From sequence record LC727695.1: a stretch of 64,000 nucleotides of DNA; one strand, 5' to 3'. Under the pieces are notes generated by a model. The model searched no databases. It saw only the letters and a list, made by a program, of their open reading frames with translations, and was not told the DNA's origin. A program made the position numbers and the translations under genes. Shown one piece after another: positions 51,365-63,984 of the stretch (position 1 is its first letter; each line of letters begins with the position of its first letter).

Positions 51365-52426
51365 TTATTTCCAGAGTGTTTTACCAATTAGATCATTTTC
51401 CGCAATGAATGCATCTAATTGATGTCCATAGTAAAGTAAACTATGAATTTGTTGATTTAGTCGTTCTTTATTTGAACCTAAGAACATCTTGTGCTTCTCA
51501 CCATCAGGTAGTTGATCGTAAACTCGTTGGCAGTACTTCTGTGCCACAACCTTACCAGATGCAAGGAAACGCTCATCACCTTCGAATAACTGAGGGATAA
51601 TATTTTCATCAAGATACTTACTGATTTCAGTATCTAGATCAAAATGTAAATCACAGTCAGATACTTCTACAGGATTTTCCTGCTGTGCATCATTCCATGG
51701 GATGTCCGAACTTTCACTATTGCTATCATATTCACTATTACTTGAGGATGTGTCAGATAGCTGCTCATCAAAAGATGATTGTTTATTCTTTTGTTTTTCA
51801 CGCAAGAAGATAATCGATTCAACAATTTCATTAACAATGACATCTAGACCACGATTAGCATCGACCGTAATAGAACTAGGTTGATTGATGAGTCGTTCAA
51901 AACCTTTATCAACCTTATCGAAGTAATCAGATCCTTTAGATTCATAATAATCAAGACGCCTATTACTTCTCTTAATTCGTTCTTCACGTACCTCTTTAGG
52001 TGCAGTCAGGAAGAAGGTAGCTGGCTCTGGGATAGAGTGTAAGGTTCCTTGAAGGATATCCATAAACAATTTTGATAGATATGGATTAGTTTCTTCGAAA
52101 GGATACACATTTAGAGCATATGTCGATGCAATGAATCGCTCGGTAATAACAATCTTATCTTCTTTAAGAGCAGGTAAGATGATATTCTCTACATTCATCA
52201 CTCTATATGCACTATGCATCAGTACATCAAATTCCGGTGGTCGAACATCATTGTGTTTAGGCCAAATCAGCATTTGTCGGATTTCTTCTGATGTATTTGT
52301 ACCGCCAGGTTCACGTAGTGTTACGACATCATATCCACGTTTAAGAAGCTCCGCAACAACCATTTTTGTAACGGTCGTTTTACCGACACCTTCATTCCCT
52401 TCAATACTTACAAATAAACCATTCAT
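51365..52426 (-). CDS. tmk: thymidylate kinase with C-terminal extension
   Basis: SIEGNEGVGKTT, REPGGT, ERFIAST.A. Confidence 0.9.
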   Translation of the reverse strand: MNGLFVSIEGNEGVGKTTVTKMVVAELLKRGYDVVTLREPGGTNTSEEIRQMLIWPKHNDVRPPEFDVLMHSAYRVMNVENIILPALKEDKIVITERFIASTYALNVYPFEETNPYLSKLFMDILQGTLHSIPEPATFFLTAPKEVREERIKRSNRRLDYYESKGSDYFDKVDKGFERLINQPSSITVDANRGLDVIVNEIVESIIFLREKQKNKQSSFDEQLSDTSSSNSEYDSNSESSDIPWNDAQQENPVEVSDCDLHFDLDTEISKYLDENIIPQLFEGDERFLASGKVVAQKYCQRVYDQLPDGEKHKMFLGSNKERLNQQIHSLLYYGHQLDAFIAENDLIGKTLWK

Positions 52427-53310: not shown

Positions 53311-53607
53311 TTAATTTACATCTTTCATTACAAAGCAACTACCATCATTAAAGACAATCTTAATTAGATTGTCAGTTAATGGTCGTTTATATACAACACA
53401 TTTTACATCGGGGAGTTTAACTACTTCTTTTAAAGCATCTGGCATACCAATTAGATTAATGGTAGCTGCTACTTTATTTAGTGTGTCAAGATGTGAAATC
53501 AGCTCATGTGCTGACTTAACCAAATCTACCATTGTTTTGTCTTTATCTACCATGCTAGTTACTCGATTTGATATATGAGGTACATACATCGCCAAAGTCT
53601 TCACCAC
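53311..53607 (-). CDS. hypothetical protein (start uncertain)
   Basis: 98-aa ORF overlapping the next gene. Confidence 0.6.
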   Translation of the reverse strand: MVKTLAMYVPHISNRVTSMVDKDKTMVDLVKSAHELISHLDTLNKVAATINLIGMPDALKEVVKLPDVKCVVYKRPLTDNLIKIVFNDGSCFVMKDVN

Positions 53608-54049
53608 TAGTATCAGCTACAATTGCAACTGGCGACCATCGAGCGGCAACAGCCTCACATACACCGATCGAATTCACTCGACGAATCGCATGAGCACCAG
53701 TATCAATTACACTGAAACTGAGTTCACTAATGATTTCCACTCCTTTTAGTTCAGCGCTACTATCAATAACCTGGGTACTAATTAGATAGTTAGCTGTATC
53801 ATTATTATACGCAAGTACTAGTCTAAAAACCATGAGGGAGTTATCATTATCGGTGATGCCAGCGACTAGCTCATGATTCGAAGTGAGTGTATAGATACAA
53901 CTACTTTCTTGAGTGGTAATTGGTAATCCTGGTGAAGAACTATATACACTAGGTGCATTAGCTGTATGTAGTTCAAACTTATTTACAGCGGAGTTAGGAC
54001 CAGGAACTTTATAACCAATAGGTCGGGCAGTGAAGATTACAACGTTCAT
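53555..54049 (-). CDS. conserved phiKZ-like hypothetical (possible virion) protein
   Basis: 164-aa ORF, GAGGA SD. Confidence 0.7.
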   Translation of the reverse strand: MNVVIFTARPIGYKVPGPNSAVNKFELHTANAPSVYSSSPGLPITTQESSCIYTLTSNHELVAGITDNDNSLMVFRLVLAYNNDTANYLISTQVIDSSAELKGVEIISELSFSVIDTGAHAIRRVNSIGVCEAVAARWSPVAIVADTSGEDFGDVCTSYIKSSN

Positions 54050-54156: not shown

Positions 54157-54849
54157 TTAATTACCACTATAAGTACCTTCAGTACCCTGTTCTTTACGTC
54201 GTACGAAGCGTTGATGAATTGCACTAAGAGCACGGTCCATTGAATTAATCACTACCTGATTCTCTTCACATGCAAATGGGCCTGCTTGGTAACCTTCAAA
54301 TAAATCTTTAACGATTTTAATTAGACAGTCAGCAGTTAGGCCATTTACACCAACTTCTGGAACAAGTCCATTCTGCATTAGGATAACGCATTCAGTCAGG
54401 TTATCACCAGGCATAGCAGCTGGGTTAGTCTGAGCATTATAACCAGTTACCACATAACGTTTAGTTGCACCTGATTTCTGGTCAATGCCACTTGCTTCAA
54501 TATTTAGACCATTTTCATCAAAATGTTCATGGCCATAAATACCTTGCATAGTTACCCATCCACCATCTTCTTGATAAATCCAATCTACCCCATTTACATG
54601 ATAAGTATCGCCTGGTTCAGGGTCAGCTGGAAGATCTTTAGTAGTGGTTAATGCACGGATACGCGCATATTCTTCAATTGCAATTTGTACATCAGTTGCA
54701 GTAATTTTCTTCTCAGGTTCAGTAGCTTCATCTTGTTGAGACTTATCGCTACCTTCCTTTTGATCATTATCCATATCGGAAGAATCTACTGTACTCTTAG
54801 CTTCTTTACTTTCTAAGGAAGCTAACCACTCAAGATTAGGTTTAGACAT
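54157..54849 (-). CDS. tad1: Tad1-like cyclic-nucleotide/gcADPR sponge with N-terminal extension
   Basis: C-terminal QNG...GVNG....LI.IV.D....YQAGPF.C.EN......R...R....EGT matches the Tad1 pattern; start set at MSKPNLEW (GAGGT SD). Confidence 0.8.
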   Translation of the reverse strand: MSKPNLEWLASLESKEAKSTVDSSDMDNDQKEGSDKSQQDEATEPEKKITATDVQIAIEEYARIRALTTTKDLPADPEPGDTYHVNGVDWIYQEDGGWVTMQGIYGHEHFDENGLNIEASGIDQKSGATKRYVVTGYNAQTNPAAMPGDNLTECVILMQNGLVPEVGVNGLTADCLIKIVKDLFEGYQAGPFACEENQVVINSMDRALSAIHQRFVRRKEQGTEGTYSGN

Positions 54850-54856
54850 ACTTACC

Positions 54857-55162
54857 TCAATAAATGAAACCACCAATGTAAAGTGACACTACTACATCGG
54901 CAACCCGAGGGTCTTGTGAATATTTAGATTTGACTAGTTTAATAAGTTCGGCTCGATTTTTAATGAAGCCTAGTTTCTTATTATCAATTTCTTCAGCTTT
55001 AATTAGGAAGTCATCTAACTTCTTCTTACTACCCAGTAAATTAATCACCATTTGATCAATAACTGCATTAGAATTTGATAGTTTAGTTAATTCTTGTTCA
55101 AAAACTTCCTTACGTCCTTCTGATCCAATTAAAGCTAGACCGATCTTTTTAAGTAGAGACAT
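54857..55162 (-). CDS. hypothetical protein
   Basis: 101-aa ORF, AGGT SD. Confidence 0.7.
   Translation of the reverse strand: MSLLKKIGLALIGSEGRKEVFEQELTKLSNSNAVIDQMVINLLGSKKKLDDFLIKAEEIDNKKLGFIKNRAELIKLVKSKYSQDPRVADVVVSLYIGGFIY

Positions 55163-55220: not shown

Positions 55221-63984
<8,764 letters not shown>

Follow-up and report, generated by a model that had tools for sequence, protein, structure and literature searches.

A phiKZ gp184 ortholog in sequence record LC727695.1 as a highly probable virion-delivered Tad1 immune-signal sponge

We have analysed a stretch of 64,000 nucleotides from sequence record LC727695.1, hereafter called the window, and deal here with a gene at positions 54157 to 54849 of its minus strand, which encodes a protein of 230 amino acids (aa). 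This gene is an ortholog of gp184 of phage phiKZ, and we hold with high confidence that its product is a phiKZ-type virion-delivered Tad1 immune-signal sponge, which would be released by the prohead protease and would bind the signals of bacterial defence early in infection. The finding has already been published for phiKZ, and the window adds an isolate rather than a new idea, as the point about delivery is in print for phiKZ gp184. The original prediction made for this gene, namely that the sponge is packaged in the virion to give protection at the moment of injection, is supported by the structure of the phiKZ capsid, by the cleavage of gp184 by the head protease gp175, by the western-blot evidence for its injection and by a printed model, all of them for phiKZ; the interpretation was right, and it was already in print. 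The gene and the four parts of its product are laid out below, with coordinates that refer to the window.

54157 to 54849, minus strand: gene for the 230-aa phiKZ gp184 ortholog (Tad1 plus capsid anchor), placed by its open reading frame (ORF) and sequence, stop codon included
54811 to 54849, minus strand: residues 1-13, a leader ending in S-L-E and a putative prohead-targeting propeptide, placed by the N-terminal alignment A3
54661 to 54810, minus strand: residues 14-63, an acidic linker that is predicted to be disordered and contains the [SAG]-x-E motifs SKE16, ATE44 and AIE59
54526 to 54660, minus strand: residues 64-108, a beta module (capsid anchor) ending in G-H-E, placed by AlphaFold2 strands with a predicted local distance difference test score (pLDDT) of about 70
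54160 to 54525, minus strand: residues 109-230 (122 residues), a Tad1 sponge domain, placed by matches to Tad1 proteins in the PDB, by Foldseek and by pocket residues

In a nucleotide search, the 3-kb surroundings of the gene show 100% identity to Pseudomonas phage 'sp. Brmt' and 96.4% to phiKZ DNA, and 47 phiKZ-type records match them. The 230-aa protein is itself 100% identical to its counterpart in phage Brmt, and it matches chain I ('gp184') of PDB entry 8y6v over the full length (phmmer, E 3.4e-154), with 227 of the 230 residues identical and the 3 substitutions relative to phiKZ gp184 lying at positions 75, 177 and 215. A full-length match was also found to PHROG 22140. The genes of this region are annotated in phiKZ as PHIKZ181 (tail-associated endolysin), 182, 183, 184 ('structural protein') and 185, and the window is syntenic with gp181-186. 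Length, neighbours (gp181-186) and domain order are the same as those of phiKZ gp184 (PHIKZ184; 8y6v chain I); there is no difference of substance between the two proteins, and the window represents a sister isolate.

It had been claimed that the last ~125 residues follow the Tad1 pattern, and on this point phmmer, profile and Foldseek searches all agree. A phmmer search of the PDB returned five Tad1 sequences with E-values of 1.5e-6 to 1.3e-5, and a profile of the 21 Tad1-domain relatives in alignment A1, which was also used for residue conservation, reached the Tad1 sequences of the PDB at E 8e-13 to 1e-10 and covered residues 8-123 of a 125-aa chain. In addition, tblastn reached a gene annotated 'Tad1' in Bacillus phage SBSphiJ7. 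The AlphaFold2 model contains strands at residues 116-122, 129-135 and 153-159 and helices at residues 173-189 and 195-220, with a pLDDT of 57-84 over the domain. A comparison of the fold with CbTad1 and CmTad1, which had been proposed as a check on the assignment, came out in its favour: when the model was searched against the PDB by Foldseek, ranks 1-20 were all Tad1 structures (probability 1.00, E 3e-6 to 7e-5, template-modelling (TM) score on the target 0.59-0.70). The fold, a beta sheet with two long helices, is the same as that of CbTad1 (7uav/7uaw/8smd/8kbe-h), CmTad1 (8kbb-d) and SBSphiJ7 Tad1, whereas the window protein has ~20-25% identity to the stand-alone Tad1 proteins and carries ~108 extra N-terminal residues. 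The likeness to Tad1 is confirmed as far beyond chance, and the identification of the C-terminal domain as Tad1 is supported by sequence, fold and pocket residues. We also observed that residues 86-225 are matched at 36-38% identity in the Rhizobium/Agrobacterium phages LG08 and OLIVR5 (~150 kb; PP429226.1 86283-86702 and NC_055841.1 39977-40396), where the match runs across two annotated genes, one of them named 'ABC transporter ATPase', a misnomer also found on PDB 7uav. This locus may encode another extended Tad1.

In CbTad1, residues F82, N92, R109 and R113 form the pocket for glycocyclic ADP-ribose (gcADPR) and cyclic dinucleotides, and the double mutants R109A/R113A and F82A/N92A are severely reduced in the binding of 1''-2' gcADPR (Tad1 preprint). 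Taking the residue roles from this preprint and mapping the residues through the phmmer alignment to the Tad1 sequences of the PDB, we found that they correspond to Y187, N197, R214 and R218 of the window protein, in which the residues of the CbTad1-type pocket are kept. N197, R214 and R218 are invariant in 21 of the 21 relatives, and position 187 is tyrosine in 9 and phenylalanine in 12 of them. Two landmarks to which the original prediction had pointed could be located exactly, the 'F-x-C-x-EN' segment as F192-A-C194-E-E196-N197 and the 'RxxxR pair' as R214/R218. Furthermore, an intertwined dimer as in stand-alone Tad1 is predicted for the window protein, and the predicted interface contains residues 187, 197 and 214.

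The Tad1 preprint assigns the pocket for cyclic trinucleotides (cA3), together with residues of the hexamer, to R90/T97 in CbTad1 and to R88/T95 in CmTad1, and names K96, Q98, E99, M102, W103 and K106 as further residues of the CmTad1 hexamer interface (a trimer of dimers). R90 and T97, which hold cA3 and build the hexamer in the Clostridium Tad1, are E195 and N202 in the window protein. As far as the residues are concerned, the whole CmTad1 series R88/T95/K96/Q98/E99/M102/W103/K106 is not kept, and is found here as E195, N202, S203, D205, R206, S209, A210 and Q213. In the 21 relatives position 195 is never arginine (E in 18, D in 2 and P in 1), and position 202 is never threonine. Judged from these aligned sequences, the cyclic-trinucleotide pocket and the hexamer-interface residues are not kept in the jumbo-phage Tad1 clade. 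It has also been reported that, under a cyclic-oligonucleotide-based antiphage signalling system (CBASS) that depends on cA3, an nlp1 mutant of phiKZ was rescued when an Acb2 that sponges cA3 was provided in trans. This result suggests to us that phiKZ's own Tad1 does not cover the cA3 signal, which fits the replaced residues of the cA3 pocket.

The part of the protein in front of the Tad1 domain is what sets it apart. The ~105 extra N-terminal residues had been called unusual, and they are, the solved Tad1 proteins being only 123-138 aa long; the acidic or disordered N-terminal stretch that had been described is likewise found, residues 1-63 having a pLDDT below 50 in the AlphaFold2 model and being predicted as disordered. 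The next part had been compared with small modules of tail fibres on account of a motif of which the letters are indeed present: LPADPEPGDTYHVNG makes up residues 73-87, and is followed by WIYQ and then by GGW. The fibre-like nature did not stand. The AlphaFold2 model of the beta module superposes on the 34 residues that were modelled for chain I in 8y6v, the root-mean-square deviation being 1.6 A and the TM score on the target 0.77 (Foldseek), and it is because of this superposition on a piece modelled in the capsid, together with the placement given in the capsid paper, that we take the module to be an inner-capsid anchor and not a fibre module. A tail-fibre or DUF2793-like module was considered and rejected, as there is no Pfam match and the module is what the capsid model shows as a 34-residue piece. 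A Pfam scan of the protein returned no family for the beta module, and when the module was searched by phmmer against 1.84 billion proteins, five convincing matches in a single stretch came back. Two of these are internal head proteins, and the others are a fragment of gp184, a Tad1 fusion and the product of phiPA3 gene 096. A further 15 matches were weak and spread over several stretches, and the 8 of them that were scanned contain unrelated domains (TPR, flagellar, collagen and others), with DUF2793 in only 1.

The capsid location, proteolysis, injection and Tad1 assignment were demonstrated elsewhere, for phiKZ gp184, from which the window protein differs by 3 residues; the orthology, the Tad1 fold, the conservation of the pocket, the module boundaries and the positions and conservation of the cleavage motifs come from the present analysis. 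According to the capsid paper, phiKZ gp184 belongs to the minor capsid proteins and forms part of the inner vertex-binding complex, of which it is the one mainly beta-stranded member; it is inserted between gp86 and the hexameric capsomer 1, and each vertex has five such complexes. The same paper counts gp184 among the minor capsid proteins that are cleaved by the head protease gp175 and have previously verified cleavage sites. Injection of gp184 has been validated by western blot on translation-blocked cells (PMC10449902). More recently, a transposon study of phiKZ named orf184 'tad1' and found it dispensable for growth, unlike the core proteins of the vertex complex; in the model of that study the capsid holds the wedged N-terminus, and the C-terminus, which the head protease frees, is injected in the following round. 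AntiDefenseFinder gives Tad1 as the sole known anti-defence gene of phiKZ, and papers citing Li et al. (Nature 2024) report that CBASS and Thoeris are both blocked by phiKZ Tad1. There is no mention of phiKZ in the preprint that Li et al. posted in 2023.

The recognition motif of the phiKZ protease is S-x-E, and gp86 is cut at SQE-122. The window protein has [SAG]-x-E motifs at E13, E16, E44, E59 and E108, two of which, E13 and E108, are also found conserved in relatives. Such a motif lies 3-19 residues before the Tad1 domain in 21 of the 21 relatives, and in alignment A2, which holds the module-bearing proteins, G-x-E directly follows the module in every protein that has downstream cargo. Cuts after E13 and after E108 of the window protein are what we infer from these positions.

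The leader aligns, in the alignment A3 of N-terminal leaders, with the N-termini of phiKZ gp93, gp94, gp95 and gp97, of phiPA3 gp217 and of 201phi2-1 gp280, and gp93 of phiKZ is reported to be cut at SLE-13 (PMC5694885). It was also seen that gp184, the ejected head proteins gp93, gp94, gp95 and gp97 of phiKZ and the phiPA3 and 201phi2-1 Tad1 proteins, which have no module, all carry a leader that closes with [S/G]-L-E near residue 13. The leader-bearing loci are the following.

L010, 14981 to 21002: phiKZ gp93-gp97
L006, 3773 to 3892: leader-bearing locus
L009, 3264 to 3383: leader-bearing locus

The phiKZ proteins gp93-gp97 (PF12699, phiKZ_IP) resemble the window protein in that they have the same S-L-E leader at ~13, are processed by gp175 and leave an N-terminal part in the shell while the C-terminal part is ejected; they differ from it in that their cargo is a helical internal-head domain and not a sponge, and in that the capsid-bound part is fibre-like and not a small beta module. 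Another comparable system is IPI* of phage T4, an anti-defence protein with a short N-terminal prohead-targeting sequence that is cut after a glutamate by the prohead protease, and which is injected with the DNA. IPI*, however, acts on a restriction enzyme, which it inhibits through protein binding, and not as a signal sponge, and it lacks a module for anchoring in the shell.

Two architectures of the gene occur at one syntenic site of phiKZ-like phages, which follows the gp181-like and gp182-like genes and precedes the thymidylate kinase gene. The phiKZ-type architecture has the beta module, while a type of ~200 aa without the module, found in phiPA3 (gp217), in 201phi2-1 (gp280) and in many metagenomic contigs, has kept the leader and the acidic linker (alignment A1); gp280 of 201phi2-1 is annotated 'identified using mass spectrometry'. 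The anchor, the cleavage motif and Tad1 occur together in diverged metagenomic jumbo phages at 41-46% identity (P0003-P0005 and P0032). At the syntenic site of phage Psa21, gp249 (L005, 2357-2632) is a protein of 91 aa that consists of the module alone, and it ends in ...YGH where the window protein has G-H-E108. The module was the only part matched by tblastn in Psa21 and RVTF4, with no Tad1 domain shown. In phiPA3, gene 096 (L007, 2461-3426), which belongs to an inner-body cluster, encodes a virion structural protein of 321 aa with the module at ~181-232. In HHBS36_1, CDS0319 (L008, 2351-5041) is an internal head protein of ~896 aa that is headed by the module, and phages of the HHBS36_1 and PS119XW type have the module at the head of internal head proteins (PF12699) of ~880-900 aa. 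The module is also conserved in P0022 and P0023, with other cargo or none. In each matching record only one place is similar to the N-terminal part.

These observations led us to a more general proposal, to which we would give an even chance: the module together with its G-x-E may form an anchor for loading that is portable, is released by the protease and fits one fixed slot in the vertex complex of phiKZ-like capsids, with cargo that varies by lineage, and this proposal includes the loading of the phiPA3 and 201phi2-1 Tad1 proteins by the leader only, and the restriction of the clade to sponging gcADPR and cyclic dinucleotides. In this reading the cargo is Tad1 in phages of the phiKZ type and in several metagenomic jumbo phages, a PF12699 protein in the PS119XW/HHBS36_1 type, a tail of ~90 residues in phiPA3 gene 096, and none in Psa21, RVTF4 and D6. 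It has been described in the literature that the vertex-binding complex in the Goslar virion structure has no homologue of gp184 or gp162, and for this reason the anchor slot appears to be restricted to the Pseudomonas phiKZ-like branch. What is added here to the literature is modest, and consists of the G-x-E-ended anchor with varying cargo, the shared SLE-13 leader and the residues of the cyclic-trinucleotide pocket and the hexamer that are not kept. Cargo swapping on the anchor, the SLE-13 leader and the absent cA3 pocket are useful annotations for Chimalliviridae genes that are labelled 'hypothetical protein'.

The mechanism that we propose would run as follows. The precursor would be made up of a leader of 13 residues, an acidic disordered linker, a beta module of ~45 residues and a Tad1 domain of 122 residues, the leader ending in an S-L-E of the kind found on the ejected head proteins of phiKZ. 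The beta module would sit against the capsid's inner face, in the vertex-binding complex. During head maturation the prohead protease, which is gp175 in phiKZ, would cut after the glutamate in S/A/G-x-E, and a cut behind G-H-E108 would keep the beta module in the shell and set the Tad1 domain free within the head. Once injected, Tad1 would bind the gcADPR of Thoeris and the cyclic dinucleotides of CBASS in its dimer-interface pocket prior to any expression of phage genes. Since there are five complexes per vertex, the dose would be ~55-60 copies per head, which could buffer only the earliest signal molecules. A sponge that arrives with the DNA would act before phage expression and would close the gap in which Thoeris or CBASS could fire, and the head protease and capsid lattice of a jumbo phage would thereby serve as a delivery system for an anti-defence protein.

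Several points weigh against this account. On the side of the capsid, the modelled piece of gp184 is shorter than the proteolytic product, the remainder being invisible, likely because of flexibility (capsid paper); given this difference in length, the verified cut of gp184 may lie elsewhere than at E108, e.g. on the N-terminal side. The [SAG]-x-E motif is short and common in acidic sequence, 7 being found in the protein versus 4.7 +/- 1.8 in shuffles; for this reason its weight lies in the conservation of its positions and not in its presence. As for the Tad1 domain, the AlphaFold2 model of the protein is only moderate, with a mean pLDDT of 58.5. The Pfam model PF24729 (Acb2_Tad1_hairpin) gave no match in scans of the protein or of its C-terminal half and appears only as 'weak' precomputed matches on relatives, and nothing useful came from scanning these two sequences with Pfam and NCBIfam. 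Finally, the homodimer prediction for residues 109-230 scored 0.93 versus 0.02 for the best control, a result that may reflect memory of solved Tad1 dimers; among proteins solved as pairs 21 of 30 attained this mark, and among those solved as single chains 0 of 23 did.

The capsid data could also be read to mean that the Tad1 domain is not released at all, and stays covalently attached to the beta module and held at the inner wall of the capsid, where it would act as structural filler, with no sponge delivered. The invisible remainder of gp184 would agree with such an arrangement, as would the fact that the cut at E108 is deduced from a short motif. We nevertheless consider it very unlikely, as injection of gp184 was validated on translation-blocked cells, the transposon study has the C-terminus liberated by the head protease, G-x-E is conserved right after the module wherever cargo follows, and the natural module-only protein of Psa21 stops at exactly the point of G-H-E108. 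Nor does a loss of function in the domain account well for the data. The replacement of all the residues of the cyclic-trinucleotide pocket and hexamer interface of the Clostridium Tad1, together with the missing match to a Pfam model, might suggest a Tad1 relic that binds no nucleotide and serves only in capsid assembly; we find this hardly credible in view of the invariant N197, R214 and R218 and the always aromatic position 187 in the 21 relatives, of the phiKZ transposon screen, where the gene proved dispensable and the core proteins of the vertex complex did not, and of the block of CBASS and Thoeris that the citing papers ascribe to phiKZ Tad1.

A further question is whether packaging matters, or is incidental to a sponge that acts mainly as newly made protein later in infection, the few packaged copies being of little effect. 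By our arithmetic the ~55-60 copies amount to about as many sites for gcADPR or cyclic dinucleotides per head, the gene lies within a unit of virion genes, and transcripts of close relatives are present in 14 RNA-seq runs, all of which would suit later synthesis. We regard packaging without consequence as unlikely, though, and favour delivery as a selected trait, because the anchor, the cleavage motif and Tad1 are kept together at the identities given above for P0003-P0005 and P0032, because the relatives that lack the module retain the leader and an [SAG]-x-E before the domain, and because 201phi2-1 gp280 carries its mass-spectrometry annotation. Packaged delivery and later synthesis are not mutually exclusive.

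The gene lies in the following genomic setting.

54855 to 54858, minus strand: GAGG Shine-Dalgarno sequence of the gp184-like gene, read from the sequence, 5 nucleotides (nt) upstream of the ATG
54857 to 55162, minus strand: gp183-like gene, 101 aa, directly upstream of the gp184-like gene
55221 to 57215, minus strand: gp182-like gene, 664 aa
54133 to 54150, minus strand: terminator-like GC-rich hairpin with a T-rich tail, 7 nt past the gp184-like stop (-16.7 kcal/mol, z -4.0)
57236 to 57263, minus strand: second terminator-like hairpin, past the 2241-aa gp181-like gene, as the upstream limit of a putative gp182-183-184 unit

The gp184-like ORF of 230 aa runs on the minus strand from an ATG at 54849 to a TAA at 54157-54159. 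A longer alternative from a TTG at 54876 is present in the ORF listing; the ATG at 54849 was taken as the start because it matches the phiKZ annotation and the deposited 230-aa chain I of 8y6v. The gp182 protein of phiKZ is a baseplate spacer protein (PMC13250141). The genes for the 664-aa, 101-aa and 230-aa proteins sit between the two terminator-like hairpins, and because of these hairpins, at 54150-54133 and 57263-57236, the earlier remark that the gene ends a transcript is consistent with the sequence. The GAGG of the gp184-like gene (54855-54858) shares bases with the gp183-like stop codon (54857-54859), which suggests that the translation of the two may be coupled. A scan for sigma-70 promoters found 7 sites versus 11.8 in shuffles, fewer than the shuffles and uninformative, as the phage has its own RNA polymerases. 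The 14 RNA-seq runs mentioned above are public, and it is the gp184-like gene of close relatives whose transcripts they contain.

Two further observations concern genes downstream. The gp185 ortholog (53555-54049, minus strand) has 164 aa in the window versus 184 aa as annotated in phiKZ (L001, 3556-4110), and in this region the DNA matches to phiKZ, 'LC' and PhiPizzaParty fall into two pieces, with ~61 extra bases in those phages; the difference looks like a length polymorphism in or beside gp185. The thymidylate kinase gene (51365-52426, minus strand, 353 aa) has a long Ser-rich and acid-rich C-terminal extension past the kinase part, and its counterparts in phiKZ (PHIKZ188) and in related loci are about as long.

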